From positions 1 to 64,000 of the IMG/VR virus record IMGVR_UViG_3300027985_000843: DNA of 64,000 bases; one strand, given 5' to 3'. This document shows positions 3,045 through 60,053 of this stretch, one piece after another; the stretch's first letter is position 1, and each line of letters starts with the position of its first letter. The notes under the pieces are model-generated. The model saw nothing but the letters and a program-made list of their open reading frames with translations, was not told the DNA's origin and made no database searches. The translations under genes and the position numbers were made by a program.

Positions 3045-3262
3045 CCCAAGAAGAGCTGGAACAAGCCGCCAAGGAATTCTTGGCGGACAAGGACGGCTAT
3101 TCCCTGTGGTGTATAGCCACTGGGGGCCTTAGTTTCACGACGTACGAAGACGAGCTGGAGGCCAAGTACGGTGAGAGTGAACTTCAAGCCGTAAAGAACG
3201 CGATCTATCGAGAGGTGGATCGCATGAAGAATTCTCCGAACTCTTCTGAGCCGGGAGCGTAG
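3041..3262 (+). CDS. Small hypothetical protein
   Basis: ATGA overlap with upstream ORF. Confidence 0.6.
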   Translation: MTQEELEQAAKEFLADKDGYSLWCIATGGLSFTTYEDELEAKYGESELQAVKNAIYREVDRMKNSPNSSEPGA

Positions 3263-3269
3263 TAGGGAC
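3236..3269 (+). promoter_or_regulatory. Class I promoter
   Basis: CCGAAC-N16-CGTAGTA-GGGAC-ATG(3270). Confidence 0.85.
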
Positions 3270-3682: not shown

Positions 3683-3716
3683 CCGAACCTCTTCCGAGAT
3701 GGAGCGTAGTAGGGAC
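3683..3716 (+). promoter_or_regulatory. Class I promoter
   Basis: CCGAAC-N16-CGTAGTA-GGGAC-ATG(3717). Confidence 0.85.
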
Positions 3717-4262: not shown

Positions 4263-4484
4263 ATGAACAAGACACATCGAGCCGGAGTTCGGTACTCAGA
4301 CGGAAAGCAATGGTTCGCTCGCGGCAACTATCGGTCCTTCCTGACTGCGGAAGCTGCCGCAACCCGGTTGGCAAGGCCCACAGGGTCCCTGCCTCTCGTG
4401 AAGACCCCAGAGGGCAGCATCTTCTCTATCTGGGGCCCCGATCTGCCTTCGTACTGTTTCGGGTTGAAAGTTCCGAACCCTTGA
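4263..4484 (+). CDS. Small hypothetical protein
   Basis: ORF 3 nt after the upstream TAA, in frame with it. Confidence 0.55.
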   Translation: MNKTHRAGVRYSDGKQWFARGNYRSFLTAEAAATRLARPTGSLPLVKTPEGSIFSIWGPDLPSYCFGLKVPNP

Positions 4485-4506
4485 CGGCCGGGAGCGTAGT
4501 AGAAGC
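4473..4506 (+). promoter_or_regulatory. Class I promoter
   Basis: CCGAAC-N16-CGTAGTA-GAAGC-ATG(4507). Confidence 0.85.
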
Positions 4507-4790: not shown

Positions 4791-4824
4791 CCGAACCCTT
4801 GACCTCCGGGAGCGTAGTAGAGAC
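4791..4824 (+). promoter_or_regulatory. Class I promoter
   Basis: CCGAAC-N16-CGTAGTA-GAGAC-ATG(4825). Confidence 0.85.
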
Positions 4825-10855: not shown

Positions 10856-10903
10856 GACAAGAGAAAAAGCCGAACTCTGCCGGCCGGCGACCGTAGTAGA
10901 GGC
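10856..10903. promoter_or_regulatory. Divergent class III (-) and class I (+) promoters
   Basis: Minus: TTCTCTTGTC-N13-ATG(10842). Plus: CCGAAC(10870)-N16-CGTAGTA-GAGGC-ATG(10904). Confidence 0.8.
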
Positions 10904-13015: not shown

Positions 13016-13049
13016 CCGAACCCGTTCGCTCGGGGAGCGTAGTACAGGC
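13016..13049 (+). promoter_or_regulatory. Class I promoter
   Basis: CCGAAC-N16-CGTAGTA-CAGGC-ATG(13050). Confidence 0.85.
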
Positions 13050-13322: not shown

Positions 13323-13605
13323 CCAACCTTCCAAACACCTGACGAGTCCATCCGTTCACATGACCATGTGCATTTGAGATCTGCACGGCTCCGTCCTCCC
13401 GCCTACCCGTGCACAGGTGCAAGTAGTAGCTGCCCCGAACTCGGCAGAAGACGGCATCACCCACCTTCACGTCCTCGATCTTGACGGGCTCCACCGTCAC
13501 CTTCTGCCCGCTGCGGACAATCGGAGTCATCGAGTTGCCGTGAGGGCGGTAGGACACCGTCTCCCCGCGACTCAGCTGTTCTGCTATCAGTGTATTGCGT
13601 CCCAT
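13309..13605 (-). CDS. Peptidase S24/S26-like protein
   Basis: HGNSMTP...SG..V.V..P...KVGDAVF...YYLH. Confidence 0.75.
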   Translation of the reverse strand: MGRNTLIAEQLSRGETVSYRPHGNSMTPIVRSGQKVTVEPVKIEDVKVGDAVFCRVRGSYYLHLCTGRREDGAVQISNAHGHVNGWTRQVFGRLVKVE

Positions 13606-14102
13606 TAGAATGGTATGTCGTCGATGTCCTCGGAGGCGTAGACCACCTCACCGCCCATTTCGGTGTGTCGGCCCGGAGGCATACGATCCAGTTGGAGGTT
13701 GGCCCAGTTCAAGTCCTTGCGCAGGTCGGATAGATTACGATTGACACGATTCAGCTCTTGCTGGAGATCGTAGGCTTTCTGTACGAGCTTGACCTCTTCC
13801 TGGTTGAGGGCACCCCGGAAGGCCCAGAGGGCTTTCATGAAGTGTTCCTCAGCCTCTTCACAGGTCTTGAAGACTCCAGGCGTGTCTGGCTTCACGGTGT
13901 CCGGGGTGGAGTGGACCTCTCGGCCTCGAACGGAAGAGTGACTGGGGGTTATCCAGTTGCCATCGTTGTCGACTCCCTTGACGCCCATCTTGACGACAGC
14001 GATGTTACTGACACTGGAACCAATCACCAACCATACGTTCTCTGGAACGGGTTGGGGGCGGATCATCCTCCAGTCAGCTTCCAGGTCCCACTCGTCAGTC
14101 AT
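13605..14102 (-). CDS. Hypothetical protein with SSB-like DDIPF tail
   Basis: Ends EDIDDIPF; N-terminus DEWDLEADWRMIRPQP; coiled coil. Confidence 0.7.
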   Translation of the reverse strand: MTDEWDLEADWRMIRPQPVPENVWLVIGSSVSNIAVVKMGVKGVDNDGNWITPSHSSVRGREVHSTPDTVKPDTPGVFKTCEEAEEHFMKALWAFRGALNQEEVKLVQKAYDLQQELNRVNRNLSDLRKDLNWANLQLDRMPPGRHTEMGGEVVYASEDIDDIPF

Positions 14103-15193: not shown

Positions 15194-15694
15194 TCAATCT
15201 TCCATGTCTATGTCGAGGAATGGTATTCGGCGAGCCCCGGGAGAAGCAGCAGGAGCAACGGGCTTCGCTCCGAGCTTCTGCCGGCCCGGCCGCAACGTCG
15301 CCCAAGCCTCCTCCAGGGTGCCACTCTCGTATTCGTAGAATGTGGGGAATTCCTTGAGGGCCTGCTCAGCTCGGCACCGTAGGCACACGACCCCTCCCGG
15401 GGCGCAATCACACCCGATCCGATCAGCTATCGCAGACAGCAGCATGTGTAGGTCCTGAAAGGTCTCCTCACGGCTCACGCGGACTTCAGTTCGGTCCCCC
15501 GCTCGAAGCTCCTCCCCCACCACGATCTTCCGCCCTGTTGGGTACAGTTCGTGATGGCATCGGGGACAGTCTTCGAATCCCACATCGTCGTCTCGAACCC
15601 ATACCCGACCGCAGCCCGGGCAGTGCACCACCTCGGCCGGTAGTGTCTTGGTGGGAGACTTGGAGCGGCGAGCAACCACTTTCATGTCAGGCAT
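15194..15694 (-). CDS. Zinc-ribbon hypothetical protein
   Basis: HCPGCG...DCPRC; class II motif (15705-15711) 10 nt upstream. Confidence 0.65.
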   Translation of the reverse strand: MPDMKVVARRSKSPTKTLPAEVVHCPGCGRVWVRDDDVGFEDCPRCHHELYPTGRKIVVGEELRAGDRTEVRVSREETFQDLHMLLSAIADRIGCDCAPGGVVCLRCRAEQALKEFPTFYEYESGTLEEAWATLRPGRQKLGAKPVAPAASPGARRIPFLDIDMED

Positions 15695-16082
15695 CTTCAA
15701 TGTCTACACCACCGAGCCGGCTCCAGAAGGAAGAAACTTTGGCCTTGTGCGCCTCTTCCAGCTGCTGCATCCACTCAGGCAGGTTAATCACCCCGAAAGA
15801 ACACAGGCTGCTATCCCGACTCCGAACGATTCCGAGTTGGATGCTGCCCACATCGTTTGGCGCCCACATGACCAGGACGTGCTGGCGTGGGTTGGAACGG
15901 GCGGCCGCCCGCACCCTCTCGCGGGCAATCGCGGGAGGGTCCCCCGACCCGAGCCACCCACCCCGCCGCCCTGTGTAGGATGGCAGGATCGTGCACCACT
16001 CGTCGCCCCGAGCACTCAGTCGCTCAGTGCCCGCAGGCAAGTCGTCGACGGTCCCCTCGTAGAACGACAGGCTCAGAGGCAT
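15687..16082 (-). CDS. Hypothetical protein with C-terminal SFWSRL..VD motif
   Basis: Ends SSFWSRLGGVDIEDA. Confidence 0.6.
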   Translation of the reverse strand: MPLSLSFYEGTVDDLPAGTERLSARGDEWCTILPSYTGRRGGWLGSGDPPAIARERVRAAARSNPRQHVLVMWAPNDVGSIQLGIVRSRDSSLCSFGVINLPEWMQQLEEAHKAKVSSFWSRLGGVDIEDA

Positions 16083-19790: not shown

Positions 19791-19837
19791 GTCCCTACTA
19801 CGATCGTTCTGGACGATAGTTCGGAAAAATCGGTGTA
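19791..19837. promoter_or_regulatory. Divergent class I (-) and class II (+) promoters
   Basis: Minus: CCGAAC(19824)-N16-CGTAGTA-GGGAC-ATG(19790). Plus: CGGTGTA(19831)-N10-ATG(19848). Confidence 0.85.
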
Positions 19838-22647: not shown

Positions 22648-22681
22648 GGCTCTACTACGTCAGGAACTAGGAGGAGTTCGG
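22648..22681 (-). promoter_or_regulatory. Class I promoter
   Basis: CCGAAC-N16-CGTAGTA-GAGCC-ATG(22647). Confidence 0.85.
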
Positions 22682-22978
22682 AAAGAGTTGCTTCTGGTAG
22701 GAGTGGAACACTTCGAGGACTTCCCGGGCCGATAGCGACTCGTCCACCTCGAAGCTCACCGACTTGGTTGCTACGACCACCGCGTAGCCCCTGCCGATCC
22801 ATACACCGGAAGTGACCTCCGGCCCAAGACGAACACGATGCAGCTCCTGAGCTGACAGGCCCATCCTGTACAGCTCAAGCTCGAACTTCACCCGGAACGC
22901 ATGGTGCTCCTGGATCCACTCGACGAGGGGTAGGCGATTCGAGATAGGTATTGTAGCCATTATCAATTCTTTGGTCAT
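22667..22978 (-). CDS. Hypothetical protein
   Basis: ATGA overlap with upstream ORF. Confidence 0.55.
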   Translation of the reverse strand: MTKELIMATIPISNRLPLVEWIQEHHAFRVKFELELYRMGLSAQELHRVRLGPEVTSGVWIGRGYAVVVATKSVSFEVDESLSAREVLEVFHSYQKQLFPNSS

Positions 22979-23472
22979 GGTTCATCTGGCTCCCCCTCAA
23001 TAATGTCCTCGGTTAAGCGTTCGAACGCCGTCGGGACGTGGTCGGGGATGTCGATGGGCTCCCACAGGATGTCCATCTGATCGGCGGCACACACGTACTG
23101 ACCTTCCAGGCCCGGCCGGCGAACGTTCTGGATGGTGATCTGCCCCCTGTGGGACTGCACCACCCGACCCTCTACATCTCGGTTGTCGTCTCCGACACCA
23201 ATGACCCATGAGCCTACGCTGAAAGGATCCTGTCCAGCCTCCAGAGTACCGTGAGATGCGAACCGCCTCAGGATCGGCAAAAGCTCCTGAGCATGGTCCC
23301 GCGTCAAGTGCATCCGGCCGTGCTGAATCTCCTCGCCCTCAAAGCTCACATCTACGCCAAGCCACACACAATCTTCCCCAGGAATGGAGGACTCCTGAAG
23401 ACTGCACAGGGCGCCATAGCGGTCTTGAAACTCAGCTCGCAGGAGCCCCTTCTTCGTCGGCTTGAACAACAT
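22975..23472 (-). CDS. Hypothetical phage protein with C-terminal TAFxRL motif
   Basis: F.DRYG..CSLQESS...CVWLG...RMHLTR; ends PTAFERLTEDIIEGEPDEP. Confidence 0.7.
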   Translation of the reverse strand: MLFKPTKKGLLRAEFQDRYGALCSLQESSIPGEDCVWLGVDVSFEGEEIQHGRMHLTRDHAQELLPILRRFASHGTLEAGQDPFSVGSWVIGVGDDNRDVEGRVVQSHRGQITIQNVRRPGLEGQYVCAADQMDILWEPIDIPDHVPTAFERLTEDIIEGEPDEP

Positions 23473-26185: not shown

Positions 26186-26207
26186 TACACCGGAGACCCC
26201 CGGTGTA
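26186..26207. promoter_or_regulatory. Back-to-back class II promoters
   Basis: TACACCG-N8-CGGTGTA. Confidence 0.8.
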
Positions 26208-26701
26208 TGATCGATTTCGTGCCTCTCACTTCCAATCAGATCACGGCCATCTATGCCCTAGATTGGCTGCTCGACGTGAGCGAAGACCGTCGCCGTTCGG
26301 GTCGCTCACTTGCGTGGGGCGCGGCCCTCATCAGACAAGCCCTGCGCCACCCAGGCAGACGTATCGCCTACTGTGACCACATCACCTCGATGGGCGGGGA
26401 GGAAGGGTACGAAAACCAACGCCGTATCATGTACCATGTCGTGCGCAACCTCATAGCCAGACACCCGGAACTCGACAGGCTCCAATGGGAGTTCCCCAAC
26501 ATGCGGTATTTTTGGCTGGCGTCTGATCAACTTGTGGACACCGACTGGATGCCGATGCCCCACGGCACAATGGACCCTGTCGTGTTGGGTCCCGAACCCG
26601 AGCCCCCACCTGAACCCGAGCTATCCGAACCGGCGTTCCCGGCCCCTACCTGCTGGGAGAGACTACTCGCGGAGAAAAAGGGCGACAACCCGTTCGATTG
26701 A
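26207..26701 (+). CDS. Hypothetical protein with C-terminal TCWxRL motif (likely GTG start at 26219)
   Basis: RRSGRS P-loop-like stretch, Pro-rich linker, ends PTCWERLLAEKKGDNPFD. Confidence 0.65.
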   Translation: MIDFVPLTSNQITAIYALDWLLDVSEDRRRSGRSLAWGAALIRQALRHPGRRIAYCDHITSMGGEEGYENQRRIMYHVVRNLIARHPELDRLQWEFPNMRYFWLASDQLVDTDWMPMPHGTMDPVVLGPEPEPPPEPELSEPAFPAPTCWERLLAEKKGDNPFD

Positions 26702-27549: not shown

Positions 27550-27912
27550 ATGGACAAGAAATGCGACGGCAAGGATTACTTGGTCCTCGGCAGTGTCGAT
27601 GAGACCGGCGGCCGCCGGTGCGTCATTCATCGGGCCGACCATCGGATAGAACAGGGCCGCGTCTTTCCGCTCCGAGATGGACAGCCCGTCCAACACGCCC
27701 TGGTGGTCAACGCGCCCGATGAGCACGGGCGGTTGGAAGTAGTGGCTGAGATCATCACCAATGGCCCTCCCAAGGTCGTATCCAACAAGTACCGCGAAGG
27801 CTGGGATCGAATCTTCGGCGCACCCGAGGAACCTTCCGACGACATCACCTCGATGATGATCAATCCCTGCTGCCATTACGGTCCCGACCTCGATCCGAAG
27901 GACATGAACTGA
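27550..27912 (+). CDS. Hypothetical protein
   Basis: AGGAGG SD; GPPKVVSNKYREGWDRIFG. Confidence 0.7.
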   Translation: MDKKCDGKDYLVLGSVDETGGRRCVIHRADHRIEQGRVFPLRDGQPVQHALVVNAPDEHGRLEVVAEIITNGPPKVVSNKYREGWDRIFGAPEEPSDDITSMMINPCCHYGPDLDPKDMN

Positions 27913-28442
27913 TGAAATGGCGAAAGGGCGACCTCGGACGGTTCGAATCCGAAGACAGGAACCTGCCTCGATTCGAAGTCATTCGAGCTGTGAAGGATGA
28001 GCACGTCGAGGTGTGGTACGGTGGGACCGATAAGACCACGCTCGTGCCGTGGAGCATCTTTTTCAAGGAGTGCACCAACCTGTGGAATTGGAAGCTCGAT
28101 GTGACCATCCCCCCATGGTTGGCCCCTGGTAGGGAGTTCACGGCCATGGGAAGCTTCAAGCAGGCGCTCATCAAATACAGTGTCGGACACCACATCGGGC
28201 ACAAGGTGTTCTACGGTACGTCGGAGCACGAGCACCTGTACGAGGCGGACAACGCCCGCCTCCTGGTTCGGAACATCCGGCACGACCATGCATCATGCCT
28301 CGTGCTCCCTGAGGGTCCTCTCGTGCTCGTGAGTATCGAAGATGCTGTTCGGTTTCGTCGAACCACTGCATGGTCCCGCCTGCTGGATACCAACGACATC
28401 TTCGAAGAGGAAGTTGACGATCTGGCGGAGATCTTTGGCTAG
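27912..28442 (+). CDS. Hypothetical protein with C-terminal TAWxRL motif
   Basis: Ends TTAWSRLLDTNDIFEEEVDDLAEIFG. Confidence 0.7.
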   Translation: MKWRKGDLGRFESEDRNLPRFEVIRAVKDEHVEVWYGGTDKTTLVPWSIFFKECTNLWNWKLDVTIPPWLAPGREFTAMGSFKQALIKYSVGHHIGHKVFYGTSEHEHLYEADNARLLVRNIRHDHASCLVLPEGPLVLVSIEDAVRFRRTTAWSRLLDTNDIFEEEVDDLAEIFG

Positions 28443-28633
28443 GCGTCCTTCAGTCTCTGAGCCCACGTCATGGGCTTCTTGCTCTCCTCCAGCTCAGCTT
28501 TCAACGACTGGTTTTCTTCTCGCAGGGCGCGGTTCTCCGCTTCCAAGGCGCGAACCCTGGTACGCAGGGCTTCGATCTGAGGTTGGAGATCCCTGCCGTC
28601 TTGCGGCCACAGGTCTAGGTCAACACAGGTCAT
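28439..28633 (-). CDS. Short coiled-coil protein with C-terminal TWAQRL motif
   Basis: Heptad repeats; ends KPMTWAQRLKDA. Confidence 0.65.
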   Translation of the reverse strand: MTCVDLDLWPQDGRDLQPQIEALRTRVRALEAENRALREENQSLKAELEESKKPMTWAQRLKDA

Positions 28634-28643
28634 GTTGTGAAAA

Positions 28644-28660
28644 TACACCGACTCGGTGTA
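28644..28660. promoter_or_regulatory. Back-to-back class II promoters (perfect palindrome)
   Basis: TACACCG-act-CGGTGTA. Confidence 0.8.
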
Positions 28661-28870: not shown

Positions 28871-29728
28871 TCAGCTTTTCTGGAATCGACTGTAGTTCGC
28901 TTGGATCTCGCTCGGTGTGAGGATCTTGGCGACCTCGAAGTGCATACCGTCGAGGCGGTCGTACTTCGGAGGCCACCCCCAACCTCCCCACCAGAAGCCC
29001 CAGCGAGCTGCAATGGGGACGATCTCTCGGACGCTGTTATCTGCCCCCACGAGGGCGGGACGCTGCCCGAGATAGTTGCCGTGCGTGTTGATGTCGAACG
29101 CCGTCCCCCACGCGTGGTTGCTCAGAGTCGTTCGAGACCCTCGAACGAAACGAGGAGCCCAGCTGCCACCCCACTGGTGGATGAGGACGGTTAGGTTCTC
29201 GTGTTCAATCTCCTCGAAGAGACCCAGGAGCTGGTCCTTGACCTTCGCGTTCCAGTAGATACGGCCGCTGGCCGGGAACCCGTTGATCATCGTACCTTTG
29301 AGAGTCGGAAGAACCATCTGGGTCAGGTTCTGACGCTTCCACTCAGCAGAGATGCTCACGCCCTCGGGGTTTGCCTTCGTTGGTGTCGGCGTGTGGGGGA
29401 TGTCGCCGAAAAGGGTGATACGACGCTGCCAGGTGGCCGGCTTCATGTCCGTGGGCATCGGGGGCCATGCAGGACCTTCCTTGTCGTTGTTCCCGGGCCC
29501 GACAATGACGAGGCCGTCAGCCATGGCCGAGCCCCACGTCTGGTTGCCCACGATCCCGTCCACGGGCTCCAGGTACGACTGTCTCTGGTAGGACATGGTC
29601 GCTTGGCGGGTCTTGTCTCCGAAGCTACCGTCGACGGCTCCGGCATAATAGCCAAGCCCCAGCAGGAAATTCTGCCACTTGCGTACGAGGGGGCCTCTGG
29701 ACCCCTTCATGATGGGTTCTAGTGTCAT
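28871..29728 (-). CDS. Endolysin-like protein: PG-binding domain plus M15 peptidase
   Basis: GSRGPLVRKWQ..L..LGY..VDGSFG..T..A...YQ..VDGIVG; R..SNHAWGTAFDIN...DGMHFE. Confidence 0.9.
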   Translation of the reverse strand: MTLEPIMKGSRGPLVRKWQNFLLGLGYYAGAVDGSFGDKTRQATMSYQRQSYLEPVDGIVGNQTWGSAMADGLVIVGPGNNDKEGPAWPPMPTDMKPATWQRRITLFGDIPHTPTPTKANPEGVSISAEWKRQNLTQMVLPTLKGTMINGFPASGRIYWNAKVKDQLLGLFEEIEHENLTVLIHQWGGSWAPRFVRGSRTTLSNHAWGTAFDINTHGNYLGQRPALVGADNSVREIVPIAARWGFWWGGWGWPPKYDRLDGMHFEVAKILTPSEIQANYSRFQKS

Positions 29729-29809: not shown

Positions 29810-30136
29810 ATGACAACAGACGACCACAAACCAGAAGCACCCCTGAGTAGTCCACCTGTGTCCCAGACGATTTTGAGGCTACGGCAGCAAATCGAAGAAG
29901 CTCGAACCCCAGAGGAGAAGATGGCGTTGATGCTGACCCTCGCGGCTCAGTTCGACCTTGAGCACAGCCTTCTCGACGACGGCTACAACGAGAACTACCA
30001 CAGCTACTTCGAAGAATACGAAGAAGCCCGCATGCACTTCCAGCATACGGCCCTTCGCCTCGCACGCCTGGCCCTCAGCGTGATCGATGACGAAGTGCCG
30101 AACACCTCGCCGCCTCCCCCCAAGAACGTCAACTAG
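29810..30136 (+). CDS. Hypothetical protein
   Basis: Helical acidic ORF. Confidence 0.55.
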   Translation: MTTDDHKPEAPLSSPPVSQTILRLRQQIEEARTPEEKMALMLTLAAQFDLEHSLLDDGYNENYHSYFEEYEEARMHFQHTALRLARLALSVIDDEVPNTSPPPPKNVN

Positions 30137-31020
30137 AAGTCATCGAAATCTCGACCGAGACGAGAGAAAGCCGTCGGTGCCGGCCCTCTGGGGGGCTCTG
30201 GCGGGGCCGGGCGCCTCGCAGGGGGCTCTGGCCGTCTCGGAGTCGAAGCGGGCCGTGTAGGGGGCTCTACGGCTCGAATAGGCCGAACAGCAGCGACCCT
30301 GGTCCCAGTGGCGTGGAACCTTCCGTCCTCACCCCTTTGACTGACCACGGTACCCCCGCCCCCGAAGCTCCCGCCGTATCGGCGGCCGTAATTCGGAGAG
30401 TCGTCGATGTCGATGTCCGGCATCGGCAGTTGGAATGGGCTGCCGGCACCCAGGGCTTCTTGGGCCTGCAAAGCTTCCCGGTTCATGAACAGGGACGACA
30501 GATCGGGGCTGGGAACAGAAGCAAGGTCATCAGCAAAGTTCGCATCCCCTCCAAGTTCCCAATCATCGTCGGTCGAGGTCGAGGTCGAAACCCCCGCTTG
30601 CTGCAACCGGGCGGCCCGATTCGCTATCGCAATGGCACGGGCGTCATGCTGCTCTACAATGGCAGCCGTGACCCGTTGTGTCGCCTGCGACAGAGCGTTG
30701 GCAACACTCTCGATGTTCGGTGTAAAGTCAATGTTGATGTCATCGGCGGCGAACGTAGTGAACTCCACCTCGAAGGGGACCTGCGCTTGTGATGCCTCAA
30801 CCTCGGCCAAAGGTTCGTAGGTGGGCATCTTGGGCCTGCCAAAGGTGGACGCGAATTGGGAGGACTGGACAGCCCTCATTTCCCTCACTGCGCCCGCAGA
30901 CAAGAGCATCTCCGGAGTGAGATCAGGGAGGACAGCTTCTCTGGCAGCACTGCCGTTCCGCTGACGCTCTGCCTCGACAAGTTCTTGGAGTCGTTTTTCG
31001 AGTTCGGAAGCCATGGTCAC
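30133..31020 (-). CDS. Low-complexity protein with C-terminal TAFxRL motif
   Basis: Pro/Arg-rich linker, ends PTAFSRLGRDFDDF. Confidence 0.7.
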   Translation of the reverse strand: MTMASELEKRLQELVEAERQRNGSAAREAVLPDLTPEMLLSAGAVREMRAVQSSQFASTFGRPKMPTYEPLAEVEASQAQVPFEVEFTTFAADDINIDFTPNIESVANALSQATQRVTAAIVEQHDARAIAIANRAARLQQAGVSTSTSTDDDWELGGDANFADDLASVPSPDLSSLFMNREALQAQEALGAGSPFQLPMPDIDIDDSPNYGRRYGGSFGGGGTVVSQRGEDGRFHATGTRVAAVRPIRAVEPPTRPASTPRRPEPPARRPAPPEPPRGPAPTAFSRLGRDFDDF

Positions 31021-31049
31021 ACAGTAGAGATCTAATCAGAGGATTTTCG

Positions 31050-31493
31050 ATGGGTTACCTGATAGACGATCAGTCAGTACCTCCCGTGAGAGATCGGAAA
31101 TGGCGGATATGGTCCGCCCCGGTGTACCGGTTTCTGAGCAAACCCAGATCCTGGTCTGAACTCAAGCAGTGGTCACGACAGATGAAGGTCATGAGCATCC
31201 CACGGATGACTCAGTGCCTGGCTTGGCTGGACCACATGAAGGTGGCCTACACGACCGGCCACGAGGTGAGGGACATTCGGTGGGTGTCAGTCGTCACGGA
31301 CATGTTTGACAGTGTTCCGGACGTCCTCTCCCACGAAAAAGCCGAGGATGATGGTGAAGGCGCCGGTGGTGAGAGCGACGCCCAAGGGCCCCTTGATGAA
31401 GAGGTAGATGGTGGCGGAGAAGAAGAGGACGAGCAGGATGACGGTGATGATCTTGGCGACGACTTTCACGATCTGCTCTCCAGGAACCGTTGA
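31050..31493 (+). CDS. Hypothetical protein (3' part overlaps an opposite-strand ORF)
   Basis: Plausible N-terminal domain; acidic tail is antisense to 31287-31469. Confidence 0.4.
   Translation: MGYLIDDQSVPPVRDRKWRIWSAPVYRFLSKPRSWSELKQWSRQMKVMSIPRMTQCLAWLDHMKVAYTTGHEVRDIRWVSVVTDMFDSVPDVLSHEKAEDDGEGAGGESDAQGPLDEEVDGGGEEEDEQDDGDDLGDDFHDLLSRNR
31287..31469 (-). CDS. Small 2-TM membrane protein (holin-like topology)
   Basis: Two hydrophobic helices, charged C-terminus, GTGA overlap with the 2H gene. Confidence 0.6.
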   Translation of the reverse strand: MKVVAKIITVILLVLFFSATIYLFIKGPLGVALTTGAFTIILGFFVGEDVRNTVKHVRDD

Positions 31494-32014
31494 ACCACTC
31501 GGGCAGCCTTCGTTGTCAGCACGAACGGGAAGGACACCACGAGCTTGTCATCCCCTGAGTTGCCTCCCCACAGCACCAGCTCGTGGGCGCCCCACTCGAC
31601 AGTGGGAATGCTCCGGTCCGAGAAATCCTCACCGCTGTCATCGTAGGCCAACGTCACGTGCGGCTTGAACTCGGGGTGGCGCTGGCTGTATTCGACGCCC
31701 TCTTCGTCGAACACCTTGCGGATGCGTTCCCGCAGAGCATGCAGCTCATCGGATTCCACCCGGCAGATGATGGGCTTGTTGCCGTCACTGGGGAAGCTCG
31801 TAACCAACGAGGTACCCACGGTGAATGGCTTCGTCTGTGAGGTCACTCCGAACGCCACCCGAATAATCTCGGCCAACTCGTTGATGTCCAAGTCGTCGCC
31901 GAAGAAAAACAGGGTCACATGGAAGTGTGACGTGGGCTCTCTGTCACCCGGTACATCGATCCCGCCGAGCAGACGGGCCGTTTCGTGCGGCACAGCCAAA
32001 CCAAGAAATGCCAT
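31466..32014 (-). CDS. 2H phosphoesterase (ThpR/Acb1-like) with C-terminal RVVQRFL motif
   Basis: Two HxT motifs, FHVTL and FKPHVTLAY. Confidence 0.88.
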   Translation of the reverse strand: MAFLGLAVPHETARLLGGIDVPGDREPTSHFHVTLFFFGDDLDINELAEIIRVAFGVTSQTKPFTVGTSLVTSFPSDGNKPIICRVESDELHALRERIRKVFDEEGVEYSQRHPEFKPHVTLAYDDSGEDFSDRSIPTVEWGAHELVLWGGNSGDDKLVVSFPFVLTTKAARVVQRFLESRS

Positions 32015-32021
32015 CAGTTCC

Positions 32022-33278
32022 TCACTTCCACATGATCTCGGGCTGGTAGCTCAAGAGCATCGCCTGAAGGGCTCGCTCGTAGTTGCCAGCGATCCTGTGG
32101 TTCTCGTAGATCTTGCGCTTGATGCCCATGGCCGGACTCTTGGCGTAGGCCACCAGGTCCACGCCCTTCGAGGGGTCGTACTTGAAGACGAGCTGCAAGG
32201 ACGACAACACAGGCTTCTTGCCCTCTTGGACAGGAATGGCCTTCGGGAACTCGTAGCCGATCCAAGCTTCGGCATCCCACTCCCCGTCACGACCGGCTCG
32301 GGCCCGGAAGCTTTCGAGATGCACGGGGAAGTCCTTCACCTTGCGCTTGGTCAGGGTCTTGAGGATGTCCCTGAGCGTGGCCGGGTCGAGTCCGGTGCTC
32401 ACATCTCGGCCGCCTGCCCCCATCATTGTCTCGAACGTGCTCACGATGGCGGAGTCCCAGCTGCCCTCTTGGCCCATGTGCCCGATGGCGAACAGTTCTG
32501 CGAACACTCTTCGAGGATCCTGGGCCCGGTCGGAGGCGTACTTGGTCACCTGCCACTTGGGGTCACTGAAGTCAGCTCGGCAGCCATGCAGGACGTCGTA
32601 CCGTCGACCCAGCTCTCGCAGCACCTGGTAGGTGGCGGACCCGTACTTGTCCGGGGCCAGAAGGCTGATGCTGGCCTTGACGTAAATGGTGTCGTCTGAC
32701 TCTCGATAGATGGCCGTCAGAGGGGCCTCTTGTGGGCGCACTAGGGCAATCTTCAGGCTTCCTGACAGAGCCTTGGTCCTCCACCCCTGAAGGCTGTCGA
32801 GCAGCGTGTTGAGGCGGGCAGCGTACCGGTCCAGGGTGTACTGTGAGAACCCTGCCTCGTTGAGGTAGGTCCTCGTGCACACGTCTTCTTGGAGCTTCGG
32901 GCCGCCCACCCACAGCTGGTAGCCTCCAGAGGTGCCGGCCTTGCGTGCCAACCCCTGGGCTTCGAGCTTTGCCATGCCCTCGTGTTCGGCGTCGGTCTTC
33001 GTTGAAGCGACTCCGCCGGCCCGGAGAATCTGAAGTTGTTGATCCATTCCCGTACGTCTCCAATTGCCGCCGAACCCGTTGTATTGCTTGACTGCCCAAG
33101 CAGACGCAGGTGGCGACGGCCATATGTACTTGTCCGCCGGCCTGTGGATGGTCCTTCCACCAACGGTCAGTTCCTCGACATCCCCCCGCGCGACTTCCTT
33201 GACCCTCTCCCAAAGAGCAGGGTTCGTCGGCTCGTACTCATCCGTCAGATGAGGGTAGGACGGGGCGTTCTTGGTCAT
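32022..33278 (-). CDS. Multi-domain putative late protein with degenerate zincin-like region
   Basis: PALW.RVK...WPS..AS.WAVKQY..GG.W N-terminal module; RELGR in place of HELGH followed by YA...FAELFA. Confidence 0.65.
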   Translation of the reverse strand: MTKNAPSYPHLTDEYEPTNPALWERVKEVARGDVEELTVGGRTIHRPADKYIWPSPPASAWAVKQYNGFGGNWRRTGMDQQLQILRAGGVASTKTDAEHEGMAKLEAQGLARKAGTSGGYQLWVGGPKLQEDVCTRTYLNEAGFSQYTLDRYAARLNTLLDSLQGWRTKALSGSLKIALVRPQEAPLTAIYRESDDTIYVKASISLLAPDKYGSATYQVLRELGRRYDVLHGCRADFSDPKWQVTKYASDRAQDPRRVFAELFAIGHMGQEGSWDSAIVSTFETMMGAGGRDVSTGLDPATLRDILKTLTKRKVKDFPVHLESFRARAGRDGEWDAEAWIGYEFPKAIPVQEGKKPVLSSLQLVFKYDPSKGVDLVAYAKSPAMGIKRKIYENHRIAGNYERALQAMLLSYQPEIMWK

Positions 33279-33281
33279 GAC

Positions 33282-33467
33282 CTAGTCCTTCCCGCGATTC
33301 CTGGACTTGGTGAGGTCCAGGAACAACTTGGGGACACAGACCTTCTCCCCGGTCTTCTTGCGCACGACCACGCCTCCGTCGGGCAGCTCATGCGTGACCT
33401 CCAGAGGTTCTCCCCCGAGGGCTCCTGTACGCAACCACTTGTCGGCTTCAAGATCGCTTGTGCTCAC
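33282..33467 (-). CDS. Small hypothetical protein, first gene of putative late operon
   Basis: GTG 33467 lies 13 nt from TCTTCTTGAA (33481-33490). Confidence 0.55.
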   Translation of the reverse strand: MSTSDLEADKWLRTGALGGEPLEVTHELPDGGVVVRKKTGEKVCVPKLFLDLTKSRNRGKD

Positions 33468-33490
33468 ACAGGAGCCGAAATTCAAGAAGA

Positions 33491-34174
33491 TTAGCTCTTT
33501 AGAATGGCGTGAATTCGTCGGAAGCGGCTGCGAGAGACGTTCCGGAGCTTCGTAAGGTCCAAGGGCCGAACTGGTTGGTCAAGCCACTCCTGAACTGTGT
33601 TCGGAGCCTTCACCCTCCCGAGATGCAGGTAGTGCGGCTTGGCCGGGAGAAGCTCCCGCACGAGGGCCTTGTTGTGGGTCACCACGAAGATGCCCATCGT
33701 CTTCTTGGGCGGATCGAGAGCGAAGTCTCGAATGTACTGGCCCATCCCAGCTGCCCAGCTGTCGGACAGCCCAAGGTCGGGCTCATCCCAGAAAATGGCG
33801 TGCTTGTGCTCACGTCCCCGACACGTGCGAACCCCTGCTATCACCGTGACGGTGGAGTTCTCCCCCGTCGCCTGCCATTGCTCGTTGCCGTAGACCATGC
33901 TCCGCAGCGCGTTGTACCCGTCAACCCGGCCTTGCATGCTCGGGTCCATGCATTCGATCTTGCTGTTCCTGTATGCCTGGCCGACGATCCGACGAAAGAA
34001 AGACTTGCCCCCAGCGTTGTCACCAACCACGATCACGAGCTTGCCCTTGCCAGGGGTCCAGACAGCTGGAATGGCCGGGAGGCCGCCGTCCTCCGGGTTG
34101 AAGTATTCGAGACCGTCCAGCAGATCTTCTACGAGAGCCTGGGGGCTGGAACAATCGAATTTGATGTTCGACAT
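33491..34174 (-). CDS. ABC-type ATPase
   Basis: Walker A GDNAGGKS, ATGE signature-like, Walker B/D-loop WDEPDLGLS, H-loop VVTHN. Confidence 0.85.
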   Translation of the reverse strand: MSNIKFDCSSPQALVEDLLDGLEYFNPEDGGLPAIPAVWTPGKGKLVIVVGDNAGGKSFFRRIVGQAYRNSKIECMDPSMQGRVDGYNALRSMVYGNEQWQATGENSTVTVIAGVRTCRGREHKHAIFWDEPDLGLSDSWAAGMGQYIRDFALDPPKKTMGIFVVTHNKALVRELLPAKPHYLHLGRVKAPNTVQEWLDQPVRPLDLTKLRNVSRSRFRRIHAILKS

Positions 34175-34184
34175 GCTCTAGAAC

Positions 34185-34210
34185 TACACCGGGGAGGCCG
34201 CTTCGGTGTA
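34185..34210. promoter_or_regulatory. Back-to-back class II promoters
   Basis: TACACCG-N12-CGGTGTA, each exactly 10 nt from an ATG (34174, 34221). Confidence 0.85.
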
Positions 34211-34220
34211 GAGTTTTCGC

Positions 34221-35021
34221 ATGACTCCGGAGACTGCTGCTCTAGCGACCCTTGCCGTCATCATAGGCCCTGCGCTGCTCCTGCCCGCCTATCGTATGAT
34301 CAAGCGTCGACAAAAGGCACGTCGGGCAGCTCAGAAGGTCGAACCCCCGAAAGAGGTTCCCAAGAAATCACCCGAGGTGTCGCTTGAGCCTATCGGGGGT
34401 ATCTACTACACCCGCCAGCAGATTTCTTTGGCCCACAGGGTCGTACCCTCGGCATGCATCGTCGGGATCGAAGGGCTGTCCCTTTATCTATCGGAGGGCC
34501 CTGGAACTATGGAAGTCACCCCCACAGACATCAATCTTCTCCGAACGGCCGTGTCGAACGGGTGGCTCACCAAGATCGACTCGGATTTGCCTCCACAACA
34601 AGTACCTGGAATTCGAGCCAGGCTGTCTGAAATAGGCGAAACCTTCCGACGTCGAATTGACGCCTTCCAGCGTCAATTCGATAGCGGATTGGATGCATTG
34701 CGTCGGGCTGAATCTCTGTCGGACGTGGAGCACATTGTCTACACTCCTGGAGAGGCACGCATCTACCGGGCAACCCGGGACTTCGCGCTTCGATCCGTGG
34801 AAGGCGCTACAGTGCACATTCAGAAGGGCGAGCTTCTCCGGTTCGACGGTATGACGGTCACCACTCAACACCATCAGCAAGACGCTCCGGGCCTTCGAGG
34901 GGCCGTACGCAATGGGTGGATCCGGCTTGAACCCGAAGCTGTGTCGATTCGTCAGCCGGCTCAGCCATCTCGAACAGCGACCCAGCGACTCCTCGATGAC
35001 GACGTGTGGGAGGATGCATGA
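34221..35021 (+). CDS. N-terminal TM protein with C-terminal TATxRL motif
   Basis: TM, duplicated LRxAVxNGW[LI] module, ends RTATQRLLDDDVWEDA. Confidence 0.7.
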   Translation: MTPETAALATLAVIIGPALLLPAYRMIKRRQKARRAAQKVEPPKEVPKKSPEVSLEPIGGIYYTRQQISLAHRVVPSACIVGIEGLSLYLSEGPGTMEVTPTDINLLRTAVSNGWLTKIDSDLPPQQVPGIRARLSEIGETFRRRIDAFQRQFDSGLDALRRAESLSDVEHIVYTPGEARIYRATRDFALRSVEGATVHIQKGELLRFDGMTVTTQHHQQDAPGLRGAVRNGWIRLEPEAVSIRQPAQPSRTATQRLLDDDVWEDA

Positions 35022-35371
35022 GCGACCTGATTTTTGGCTTCTTGATCGCAGTCATGGGCTTCCTATTCCTCGCAGCCGTGGTCAGGTGCGTTCTGCTGAC
35101 CCGGCAAAACCTGCTACAAGCGCAGCAGATGGATAAGCTTCGGGATGAAAACCAGCGGCTTCAAGAGTCAGCTGAGCAGCTACGAGACTCAAACGATCGG
35201 CTGAGGAGTCGCATGTTCGATCTTCGCCGCCGAAGTCGTGATCTGGCAACCAAACCGTGTACAGGGGGCGACGCGATGAAGTATCCGTCCGTCGAGACGG
35301 TCCAGCTGAAGCCGAAGCCCATCAAAACAGCCACTGCCCGCCTCCTAGATGGTGATGTGTGGGCGAAATGA
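35018..35371 (+). CDS. TM plus coiled-coil protein with C-terminal TATxRL motif
   Basis: Ends KTATARLLDGDVWAK. Confidence 0.7.
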   Translation: MSDLIFGFLIAVMGFLFLAAVVRCVLLTRQNLLQAQQMDKLRDENQRLQESAEQLRDSNDRLRSRMFDLRRRSRDLATKPCTGGDAMKYPSVETVQLKPKPIKTATARLLDGDVWAK

Positions 35372-35826
35372 ACCCTGATATCCTCGTGGATGCCCTGGCT
35401 GTGTTCGTCCTTTTGGCGGCCTTTGCCGTAGTGAAGTGGTCTCGCAAGTGGCTCAATCAAATCACCAGCCTTAATAACCAAGTCGGCGGTCTTGAGAGCC
35501 AGATTAGGATCCTCAAGGAAACGGTCCGCAGCAGGGAACAAGATCTCAACATCCTCAAAGAGGTCTCTGAGCATCGATGCTCCGAGTTCGAAGCCCGGCG
35601 GGCCGATCAAGCAGTGGAAAACGATCGACTGCGAAGGTACATTGCGTCTTTGCAGCGAGAAATTCAATCATTAAAGCGAGTCGACCAACACCAGATGAAT
35701 GTGCGGCACGACGCAAACGTGCCTCGCGAACCCCAACCACCCTCCGAACCACCACCGTCAGTCTTTCAACGTCTCGAACGCGATGATATATGGGACGCTG
35801 GCCCATGGGACACCGATCCGTCATGA
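35368..35826 (+). CDS. TM plus coiled-coil protein with C-terminal SVFxRL motif
   Basis: Ends PPSVFQRLERDDIWDAGPWDTDPS. Confidence 0.7.
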   Translation: MNPDILVDALAVFVLLAAFAVVKWSRKWLNQITSLNNQVGGLESQIRILKETVRSREQDLNILKEVSEHRCSEFEARRADQAVENDRLRRYIASLQREIQSLKRVDQHQMNVRHDANVPREPQPPSEPPPSVFQRLERDDIWDAGPWDTDPS

Positions 35827-37514
35827 AAAAGCGTATTCTTGCTGCCGTAGCAGTCTTTGCTTCTATCTCAGCTGCTGTCGTCTATGCACCCGACGCCGTT
35901 CGCTGGTACATCGAGGACACCTATCCCGACGTCGACCTTCATGGGGACGTTCACCTCGTGTGGGGCGGCGTGGAACTGACCAATGTCGCGGTCCATCGGC
36001 CGGGGCTCGACGCCACGCTGGACCGCGTGCACGTCAGTGCCGAGAAACGGGTCACTGTGCGTGGTGGAAGGGTCGCCCTGAACCTGGACACCCTTGAGGG
36101 CGGAGAAGGCCAGGAAGGGGTACCAGGGGGCGGGCATGAGGGCGTTTCAATCACCGCCTCCGAACTCAATGTCGAAGCGAAGCGAGGGGACATCCACGCC
36201 CGGCTCACAGACGTCGACGTGAATCCCTCTCGCGTGTGCTTTCGCGTCGGTGCTGTGTTCCGAGGCGACCTTCTTGCGAACGTGTGGCAAGGGTGCATGC
36301 CTCGGGACAGGTCGAAGCTGACAGCATGGCGGGTAGAAGTCCCGGTGAAGCTGCCCTTTGATGTTCCCCGAGTCGACACTCAACAGGTCGTTCGCGTGTC
36401 GAATGCGGAAGTCGTCTTGGCGGACAAGCTCGTGAGGTTCGCTTCCGCCTCCATGGGGCCATTCACAGTGATCGGGCCCGCCACGGTCAAGCTGTCGGAC
36501 GACACCGTGTTCTTCGATGCCCCACAGATTTCTGTCGATCACCCGTGGGTGTCCCCCACCCTCGCCACGTTCGACCACGCGTCTCTCACAGCACCCCTCA
36601 GCCTGTTCCAAACGGGGAAGGGGGCCTTCCGAGTTCGGATTGGGAACGCCACCATCCATCTCGACCCGGAGACTCATTCCGTGCGAGGCGACGAGGCTTG
36701 CGGAGATTGGCTGGACATCCTACCGCACCCCCTGCCCGAGGCCATGGACGACATGCAAGAGCACTTCCACGGCCGTCTGAGGTTCGAGGTGGGGGCCAAG
36801 CCCACGCCCTACCTCAACATCAAGCACAACTGCACTTACGATTGCAGTGCCCAGCCGATTGCGGACATTCGAAAAGGGTCCACAAGCTACATGGCCTACG
36901 GCTCGGACGGATCGCTCTTTGAGCGGCGTGTCGGGCGAAACACCCCAGGATGGGTTCGGATAGCGGACCTACCCCCTCATGTGCCCCGCGCGTTCATTCT
37001 GCTGGAGGACCCCGGGTTCCAAAGCCATCACGGGATTCACGTCATGGCCCTCCAGAACAGCCTGATCGCTAACCTTGAGAAGGGCGAGTTCGTAAAGGGC
37101 GGGTCCACCATCTCGATGCAGCTCTCGAAGAACCTGTGGCTTCGCCGGCACAAGACCGTCGGCCGCAAGGCTCATGAAGCCCTGCTCACAGTCGCTCTGG
37201 AATCGTGTCTCAGCAAGGCAGACATCCTGGAGTGGTACGTCAACGTGGTCGAATACGGTCCGGACCTGTACGGGCTAGGGCCCGCCGCGAAGCATTACTT
37301 CGACAAGTCTGCGCAGAACCTCGAACCCGACGAGGCATTCTACCTCGCCAGTCTTCTGCCCCGGCCTTCTCGGGCAGTCCCTCCGAAGCAAGGTGGGCTC
37401 GCCCGAGCCCACCGCCTCATGAGGATGCTCGCTCGCAGTGGCTTCATTTCTGAACATCTCATCCCAATTGAGCCCGGCGAAGTCAACGCTACTGGCTGGG
37501 AGGTGAATGAGTAA
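35823..37514 (+). CDS. Peptidoglycan transglycosylase (GT51, monofunctional/MtgA-like)
   Basis: EDPGFQSHHG, GGSTISMQLSKNL, RKAHE, KADILEWYVN, LASLLP motifs; N-terminal signal anchor. Confidence 0.9.
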   Translation: MKKRILAAVAVFASISAAVVYAPDAVRWYIEDTYPDVDLHGDVHLVWGGVELTNVAVHRPGLDATLDRVHVSAEKRVTVRGGRVALNLDTLEGGEGQEGVPGGGHEGVSITASELNVEAKRGDIHARLTDVDVNPSRVCFRVGAVFRGDLLANVWQGCMPRDRSKLTAWRVEVPVKLPFDVPRVDTQQVVRVSNAEVVLADKLVRFASASMGPFTVIGPATVKLSDDTVFFDAPQISVDHPWVSPTLATFDHASLTAPLSLFQTGKGAFRVRIGNATIHLDPETHSVRGDEACGDWLDILPHPLPEAMDDMQEHFHGRLRFEVGAKPTPYLNIKHNCTYDCSAQPIADIRKGSTSYMAYGSDGSLFERRVGRNTPGWVRIADLPPHVPRAFILLEDPGFQSHHGIHVMALQNSLIANLEKGEFVKGGSTISMQLSKNLWLRRHKTVGRKAHEALLTVALESCLSKADILEWYVNVVEYGPDLYGLGPAAKHYFDKSAQNLEPDEAFYLASLLPRPSRAVPPKQGGLARAHRLMRMLARSGFISEHLIPIEPGEVNATGWEVNE

Positions 37515-51083: not shown

Positions 51084-51427
51084 AACGTCGAGCTTTTCTT
51101 CAGGTGCTTGCTGTCACAGCAGTGCCGCTGGTGGGGTCTTTCCAAGGCGACACTGAGGACGCCTACATTCAGCTCTACGACGGCGACAAGGCGGTGACCA
51201 AGCCGCTACCCACCAAGTTCAGGTGGAACAGCAAGATGACGGTCACGGTCCAACCCTCACAACCTATCCGAGTGACCCGTGCTGTCCTGTACTCCCCCAA
51301 GGTGGGCCGAAGGAATCACGACATCGACCCCCTCATCATCAAGCCTTCGACTGAATTAACGGTGACTTGGGAGATCGGCGCGGTTTCCTCAAAAGATTTT
51401 CCGAACTCCTCCCGACGGCGAGCGTAG
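51080..51427 (+). CDS. Putative Tat-exported protein
   Basis: GTG start after AGGAG: MKRRAFLQVLAVTAVPLVG, a twin-arginine RRxFL signal. Confidence 0.6.
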   Translation: MKRRAFLQVLAVTAVPLVGSFQGDTEDAYIQLYDGDKAVTKPLPTKFRWNSKMTVTVQPSQPIRVTRAVLYSPKVGRRNHDIDPLIIKPSTELTVTWEIGAVSSKDFPNSSRRRA

Positions 51428-51434
51428 TAGGGAC
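51401..51434 (+). promoter_or_regulatory. Class I promoter
   Basis: CCGAAC-N16-CGTAGTA-GGGAC-ATG(51435). Confidence 0.85.
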
Positions 51435-60019: not shown

Positions 60020-60053
60020 CCGAACTTCTTCCGTCGGCGGTCGTAGTACGACC
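60020..60053 (+). promoter_or_regulatory. Class I promoter
   Basis: CCGAAC-N16-CGTAGTA-CGACC-ATG(60054). Confidence 0.85.

Follow-up and report, generated by a model that had tools for sequence, protein, structure and literature searches.

2H enzymes of known function fall into two groups that are relevant here. Enzymes of the ThpR/LigT group (E. coli LigT, 5LDM/4QAK; T. thermophilus 1IUH; D. radiodurans 5H7E) are RNA 2',3'-cyclic phosphodiesterases of full-size 2H fold, and typically have an Arg after the second HxTL. The phage nuclease Acb1 (T4 gene 57B; phage FBB1, 7T26/7T27), which acts against CBASS, a signalling system against phages that is based on cyclic oligonucleotides, is a compact protein of ~150 amino acids (aa), and its C-terminal residues 145-152, including W147, form a substrate lid. 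For the 2H domains linked to polyvalent proteins, MuF or portal proteins of phages, Iyer et al. 2017 (PMC5512222) predicted an action on host RNA or nucleotide signals after delivery, so the idea of injected 2H effectors is not new. The same authors argued from the missing RNA ligase partner that the polyvalent 2H domains are RNases or nucleotide-signal degraders and not repair enzymes. Here we analysed a 2H phosphoesterase of a huge phage from a hydrothermal-vent metagenome, together with a short peptide at its C-terminus, R-V-V-x-R-[YF]-L, which recurs on unrelated proteins of the same genome. The source is a 371,739-bp IMG/VR virus record (IMGVR_UViG_3300027985_000843; 59% GC, CheckV completeness 78%) with no match among cultured phages by megablast; the window is its first 64 kb.

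The 2H protein is a single-domain protein encoded by a stand-alone gene. Its two motifs are H32-V-T34-L and H119-V-T121-L, and H32, T34, H119 and T121 were invariant in an alignment of 37 homologs (alignment A1). Judged by these residues, the enzyme appears catalytically intact. Pfam matches were to 2_5_RNA_ligase2 (PF13563, 52.1 bits), LigT_PEase (35 bits) and Acb1 (PF23474, 28.5 bits), the last of which passes the gathering cut-off of 27 bits, though PF13563 scores higher. The best named match in NCBIfam was the ThpR equivalog TIGR02258, at 44.7 bits and under its cut-off of 65.7. In total, 209 homologs were found, most of them in huge phages and many on contigs of 270-530 kb, and PF23474 is recorded for most of them. 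The original prediction for this locus, made from the DNA letters, had described a 2H enzyme with two HVTL motifs, and these results confirm it.

The AlphaFold2 model (predicted local distance difference test score, pLDDT, 90.2) has the two-lobed alpha+beta 2H fold and matched solved 2H enzymes with a Foldseek E value of 1.5e-9. The closest structures were drCPDase (5H7E, Z score 19.3), TT0787 (1IUH, 19.2) and E. coli LigT (17.7). Ranks 1-11 were all held by ThpR/LigT enzymes (Z 16.4-19.3), and the root-mean-square deviation from this group was 2.2-2.9 over 157-167 residues. In contrast, the sequence profile of the 2H family aligned to T4 Acb1 with 89% probability (hhalign, E 2.3e-6) and to E. 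coli ThpR with only 7.6% (E 0.0046). Motif 1, HVTLFFFGD, is LigT-like and has the HxTLxFxG form of that group, whereas motif 2, PHVTLAY, resembles PHITLSY of Acb1 and not HITLAR of 1IUH and 5H7E, with Tyr rather than Arg after the second HxTL. The context D/E-Y/F-x-PH-[IV]-T-L-[AS]-Y is common to Acb1 and the phage enzyme. The Acb1 tetrad H44, T46, H113 and T115 aligned with the four catalytic residues named above, the invariant F74 aligned with the base-stacking W74 of Acb1, and position 113, where as we read alignment A1 most homologs have H, F, Y or W, aligned with F107, another base-stacking aromatic of Acb1. The base-stacking Y12 and W147 of Acb1, the latter in its lid, and its adenine-reading E141 fell outside the aligned region. 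Collectively, these results place the enzyme in a distinct huge-phage clade that lies between ThpR/LigT by fold and Acb1 by sequence profile. The proposed link to Acb1 therefore holds for the Pfam cut-off and the profile alignment but not for the fold, which is closer to ThpR/LigT (Z 17-19 versus 12). Signal destruction by Acb1-like enzymes is known and injection of 2H enzymes was predicted in 2017; the present enzyme adds a large, divergent clade that may show the origin of Acb1 from RNA phosphodiesterases.

The phage enzyme resembles the polyvalent 2H domains in having no RNA ligase partner. No RNA ligase, neither RtcB nor one of Rnl1 or Rnl2 type, was found in the record. RtcB and PF09414 gave no match, and no kinase partner was found in it either; a search with PF09511 also gave no match, but its control matched nowhere, so this result is uninformative. 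The 2H, zincin metallopeptidase, NUDIX and topoisomerase modules of the polyvalent repertoire co-occur in the record. Unlike the polyvalent 2H domains, the enzyme is not fused to effector domains, MuF or portal and is encoded away from the head genes, and it is linked to the polyvalent modules by the shared short peptide only. Its best relatives in cultured phages are Orf12 of Gordonia phage GMA6, whose gene is flanked by those for the portal and an ADP-ribosyltransferase, and part of ValentiniPuff gene 7, which is located after the genes for portal and MuF.

The 2H protein ends in ...KAARVVQRFLESRS. This C-terminal helix (pLDDT 64-77) lies beyond the region matched by the LigT structures and has a high helical hydrophobic moment, and close homologs keep A.RVAQR[FY]L in the tail. 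The pattern R-[VI]-[VILA]-x-R-[YFW] occurs 16 times in 14 called genes, compared to 1.19 times (maximum 6) in 200 composition-preserving shuffles of the called genes. In roughly ten copies the motif comes straight after a plausible start codon (e.g. MNLTERVVARYL, MNLVRRVVARYL and MSVVDRVVHRYL). Three lie 4-7 residues from the stop, in the 2H protein, a DUF5661 protein (KAHRVVQRFLSSTTP) and a 1118-aa polyvalent protein (MARVIARYLANRGQR). Of the three internal copies, two separate domains of the polyvalent protein and one is in a 965-aa protein. The polyvalent protein, which has a topoisomerase IB domain of eukaryotic type (Pfam E 1.5e-22), thus carries three RVVxRY copies, two interdomain and one C-terminal. 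Further carriers are a stand-alone HELGH zincin and, at the head genes, the 965-aa gene that comes next downstream of the portal, for which Atlas gave no lead, and two small genes inside the head module. None of the 14 carriers has a transmembrane segment. The tail AARVVQRFL, originally called packaging-like, is a genuine recurrent terminal motif that it shares with proteins of the polyvalent repertoire; packaging would be its putative meaning.

Arg and Val codons differ freely between the motif copies, which indicates selection on the protein level and rules out a repeat of the DNA itself. Common descent of the carriers was likewise ruled out, as no pair was similar at E < 0.01 once the motif was masked. 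The motif was also enriched elsewhere. In the 20-kb loci of 51 other huge phages it was found 19 times against 2.66 expected, with 15 of the 19 copies terminal and some in tandem. When three whole genomes were scanned with a degenerate DNA pattern of the motif, the matches numbered 18, 23 and 19, and those of the reversed control 7, 6 and 8 (the related genome G001 had 23 against 6). None of six spellings of the motif was found in any paper in a literature search, and the shared terminal peptide appears to be undescribed so far.

The 2H gene belongs to a compact unit of five minus-strand open reading frames (ORFs) that spans 34174 to 31287. Successive genes are 5, 3 and 7 nt apart, and the last two overlap by 4 nt, with the GTG start of the 60-aa gene overlapping the 2H stop codon (GTGA). 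An operon of four genes had been proposed. All four ORFs are real, but they form the distal part of one transcription unit that begins one gene earlier, with a 227-aa ATPase of the small AAA_23/ABC-like kind common in phages. In a 441-kb relative the order of transglycosylase, ATPase, 61-aa gene, a short form of the 418-aa gene, 2H, small gene with two transmembrane segments and endolysin is kept. A radical SAM gene of that relative (locus L002 3457-4590) interrupts the unit between the ATPase gene and the 61-aa gene. Among 54 related loci, the ATPase gene adjoins the 2H locus in 7, and a gene of the 418-aa family lies within ~1.4 kb of 2H in 6 and within ~5 kb in 3 more. The small 61-67-aa protein shares its C-terminal FLDL...RNRGKD with a related phage. 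The 60-aa protein has two hydrophobic segments, in agreement with the membrane protein originally described, and has a positional counterpart in a related phage. For the 418-aa, 67-aa and 227-aa proteins, no useful result came from PADLOC or PHROGs.

The model of the 418-aa protein (pLDDT 87.7) has four parts: an N-terminal domain, a winged helix (residues 76-133; Z ~6.6 to MarR proteins), a zincin-like domain (residues 131-292; Z 10.3 to 1YQY and 8.6-8.7 to PPEP-2 and PPEP-3) and a C-terminal alpha/beta domain (294-412) with no clear structural match. Within the zincin-like fold, RELGR aligned exactly with the HELGH of 20 of 24 homologs (alignment A2). Most of the 28 homologs read VHELGHRYE followed by FAELFA.GH, whereas LRELGRRY replaces the HELGH form in the 418-aa protein and in the homolog nearest to it. 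A 304-aa paralog in the same genome reads VHELGHRY...FADAFAMYV. The homologs also share RV[LA]SRWKQAL directly ahead of the C-terminal domain. The 418-aa protein thus belongs to a zincin family whose members otherwise bear HELGH, but is itself catalytically dead, as the original prediction had it, and its role is probably one in binding or as an adaptor. Inactive zincin folds used for binding are known from the N-terminal domain of anthrax lethal factor, and the 418-aa protein likewise keeps the fold (Z 9-10) without both zinc histidines. It differs in its phage setting and in a very distant sequence relation (Pfam ATLF, 22.8 bits, under the cut-off and for the active paralog only).

We favour, with a probability of about 0.38, a model that comprises a counter-defence 2H enzyme, a portable docking peptide, a co-packaged set of proteins and a dead zincin adaptor. 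The enzyme would be a metal-independent phosphodiesterase whose HxT/HxT tetrad opens or trims nucleotide signals or 2',3'-cyclic-phosphate products of host immunity; a counter-defence role is most likely and one in an RNA-repair pathway less likely. Its extra C-terminal amphipathic helix is one copy of the portable R-V-V-x-R-[YF]-L, which in at least 14 otherwise unrelated soluble proteins of the phage is placed at either terminus or at a domain junction. Since a short, sequence-specific terminal peptide is present on many unrelated soluble proteins, we infer a docking signal by which all carriers would bind one common partner. Our best guess is that this partner belongs to the procapsid or virion, in which case the carriers would be co-packaged and would enter cells together with the DNA. 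Modules of the Iyer et al. repertoire of delivered proteins are enriched among the carriers, some carriers lie within the head module, and the best cultured relatives of the 2H enzyme occupy the portal/MuF slot, all of which points towards the virion. The anti-CBASS and packaging reading of the original prediction is plausible. The unexpected element is the terminal peptide itself, kept on 14 unrelated proteins and in several genomes of huge phages. Should it act as a signal for sorting or docking, co-delivered or co-assembled effectors of unculturable phages could be listed from sequence, and the peptide could serve as a portable tag to load foreign proteins.

Several observations weigh against this model. 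The fold of the enzyme is nearer to ThpR/LigT than to Acb1, which ranked only 35th among the structural matches (Z 12.2, 129 of 137 residues aligned). The record is 78% complete, so an RNA ligase might have been missed. C-terminal residues form the substrate lid of Acb1, so the 2H tail could serve the enzyme itself, and more distant 2H homologs have other C-terminal helices. A single ortholog was found for an N-terminal carrier, and it is without the motif, which weakens the case for strict conservation and implies that the motif is gained and lost. No receptor of the motif was identified. The 2H gene, at 31.5 kb, is ~155 kb away from the head module and is surrounded by envelope and lysis genes. 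The stretch was contained in two runs, both of DNA (a hydrothermal vent metagenome and a generic metagenome), and in no RNA run. Co-folding the 2H enzyme with its 418-aa neighbour gave no support (0.01 versus a mark of 0.32), which we did not take as evidence either way.

Two simpler accounts concern the enzyme. It may be an ordinary cytoplasmic anti-CBASS nuclease of Acb1 type that is made after infection, with the C-terminal helix as its lid and the likeness to other termini separately caused. The Pfam Acb1 cut-off passed here, the record of this family for most homologs and the profile alignment to T4 Acb1 are consistent with this account, as is the conserved aromatic kept in the 2H tail. 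We nevertheless consider it unlikely: the structural match to Acb1 is far behind that to drCPDase (Z 12.2 versus 19.3), the 2H protein is ~30 residues longer, and a lid cannot explain the same heptapeptide on 13 unrelated proteins, where it is mostly N-terminal. An RNA 2',3'-cyclic phosphodiesterase of ThpR/LigT type, healing RNA ends where host anticodon nucleases or other RNases have cut, would account for the best structural matches, the best named NCBIfam match and the LigT-like motif 1. It is improbable to the same degree, given an equivalog score well under the cut-off, the weak profile alignment to E. coli ThpR, the Acb1-like motif 2 and the RNA ligase not found in the record.

Two further accounts concern the motif. 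Membrane-targeting amphipathic helices are typically terminal, basic and hydrophobic, and the 2H tail has a high hydrophobic moment. The enzyme would then be held at the inner membrane with the co-translated two-transmembrane protein, whose gene overlaps the 2H stop codon in a related phage too, among flanking genes for an M15 endolysin, a penicillin-binding protein (PBP)-type transglycosylase and membrane-anchored proteins. However, such helices keep their character and not their sequence, whereas here R, V, R and Y/F are fixed; moreover, only one of the 14 carriers has a small transmembrane gene downstream and several are encoded in the head module, which makes this account quite unlikely. 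Very unlikely, in our view, is a terminal degron or processing mark that is read by host Clp/Lon or a phage zincin to time or cut the carriers. Degrons are N- or C-terminal, several phage zincin proteins carry the motif, and the interdomain and C-terminal copies of the polyvalent protein would suit processing. The motif has no likeness to known ClpX, ClpA or Lon tags, cleavage 4-7 residues from a terminus would be purposeless, and the tandem copies in relatives suggest avidity for a binding partner.

The docking model can be taken one step further, although we regard this step as doubtful. R-V-V-x-R-[YF]-L may be a cargo-loading peptide of a huge-phage clade that, at either terminus, marks enzymes for capsid loading and injection. 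The proposed cargo would comprise the 2H phosphodiesterase, the NUDIX-topoisomerase-zincin polyvalent protein, stand-alone zincins and DUF5661 proteins. Short terminal peptides on unrelated cargo are known from the capsid targeting sequence (CTS) of T4 internal proteins and from encapsulin cargo-loading peptides, the latter at either terminus and sometimes in tandem, as here. Neither has sequence likeness to the phage motif, which also has no adjacent protease site, and capsid binding of the motif is proposed by analogy only. If this were true, the motif would be the phage counterpart of encapsulin peptides, and the injected arsenal of uncultured huge phages would be readable from sequence.

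A second, distinct C-terminal motif was observed in the genome, [FWT]-x(1-2)-R-L-(L) followed by an acidic stretch, often with a final aromatic (TAWSRLLDTNDIF, TATQRLLDDDVWEDA and TAFSRLGRDFDDF). Nine of its ten carriers cluster around the 2H unit, and in three of them an N-terminal hydrophobic segment resembles a transmembrane anchor. This second motif may be what had been called packaging-like; the 2H tail belongs to the other class. The features of the locus are listed in Table 1.

Table 1. Positions of the features described, given in the window or, where stated, in the whole record.
Feature	Position	Strand	Remarks
P-loop ATPase, 227 aa	33491-34174	-	first gene of unit; Walker A GDNAGGKS, Walker B IFWDEPD
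Small protein, no recognised family	33282-33485	-	67 aa from TTG, 61 aa from GTG 33467
418-aa protein	32022-33278	-	four domains
RELGR, residues 221-225 of 418-aa protein	32604-32618	-	replaces family HELGH
2H phosphoesterase, 182 aa	31466-32014	-	
First catalytic H-x-T (H32, T34)	31913-31921	-	invariant in alignment A1
Second catalytic H-x-T (H119, T121)	31652-31660	-	invariant in alignment A1
C-terminal helix of 2H, residues 168-181	31472-31513	-	RVVQRFL at 31481-31501
60-aa protein	31287-31469	-	two transmembrane segments, charged tail
Divergent-gene gap, 46 bp	34175-34220		palindrome inside
Palindrome starts	19024, 26186, 27517, 28644, 34185, 50602		
M15 endolysin with PG_binding_1 domain	28871-29728	-	flanks unit
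PBP-type peptidoglycan transglycosylase	35790-37514	+	PF00912, E 1.4e-45; N-terminal hydrophobic segment; flanks unit
Polyvalent protein, 1118 aa	record 65150-68506 (locus L005)	-	NUDIX, topoisomerase IB, HEMGH zincin
Head module	record 188-216 kb		holds portal, maturation protease, major head protein
Portal gene	record 206975-208807		head module
Maturation protease gene	record 201394-202884		head module
HK97-type major head protein gene	record 198484-199365		PHROG 2522, E 3e-53
Second-motif carriers	15687-16082, 22975-23472, 28439-28648, 30133-31020	-	
Second-motif carriers	26207-26701, 27912-28442, 34221-35021, 35006-35371, 35359-35826	+	
Second-motif carrier outside window	record 82440-82694	-	
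Promoter-like element	2330-2359, 3236-3264, 3683-3711, 4473-4501, 4791-4819, 10870-10898, 13016-13044, 51401-51429, 60020-60048		
Promoter-like element	19796-19824, 22653-22681	-	

The transglycosylase and M15 endolysin genes are syntenic with 2H in several related huge phages. A class III box had been placed before the 61-aa ORF, but the intergenic space there is 5 nt, and the 100 nt upstream did not recur in the genome beyond 13-nt chance matches (blastn-short of 33460-33560 against the genome). The box could not be verified; apart from it and the start of the unit, the original observation was largely right. A scan of 30800-34600 for sigma-70 promoters and terminators found nothing above shuffles. 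The regulatory region of the unit is likely the 46-bp gap shared with a divergently transcribed gene, which contains a 26-nt palindrome, TACACCGG...CGGTGTA, at 34185-34210. Palindromes of the form TACACC-N(3-20)-GGTGTA occur nine times in the genome, six of them within the window. The three examined (26186, 27517 and 34185) all lie in short gaps between divergent gene starts, and such palindromes may be a bidirectional operator or promoter element.

A promoter-like element of another kind, (T)CCGAAC-N17-(C)GTAGTA with an ATG ~6 nt later, was observed in 53 copies genome-wide, none of them within the unit. Given the constant distance to the ATG, leaderless mRNAs made from a promoter class specific to the phage are suggested. 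Within the head module, the gene for an 827-aa protein (record 195667-198150, minus strand; L099 7667-10150) has the top codon-usage score of the genome. Its homologs, at 30-35% identity and annotated as vWA-containing, are found in Ackermannviridae and RB16-like phages (PHROG 2426, E 5e-174). ARAGORN predicted a suppressor tRNA with anticodon TTA, which reads TAA, at 1355-1430 on the plus strand, overlapping the 5' part of a long ORF (1279-2349); TAA is the stop codon of 49 of the 387 called genes. The phage also carries a CRISPR-like array at record 351668-352906, with 17 copies of a ~36-nt repeat (GTCCCACCATTCAATAGGTCGTGGGCCACCTTTGAG) that are mostly 72-74 nt apart. Lastly, a 165-aa protein (13605-14102, minus strand) ends in ...SEDIDDIPF, an acidic tail as typical of bacterial single-stranded DNA-binding (SSB) proteins.

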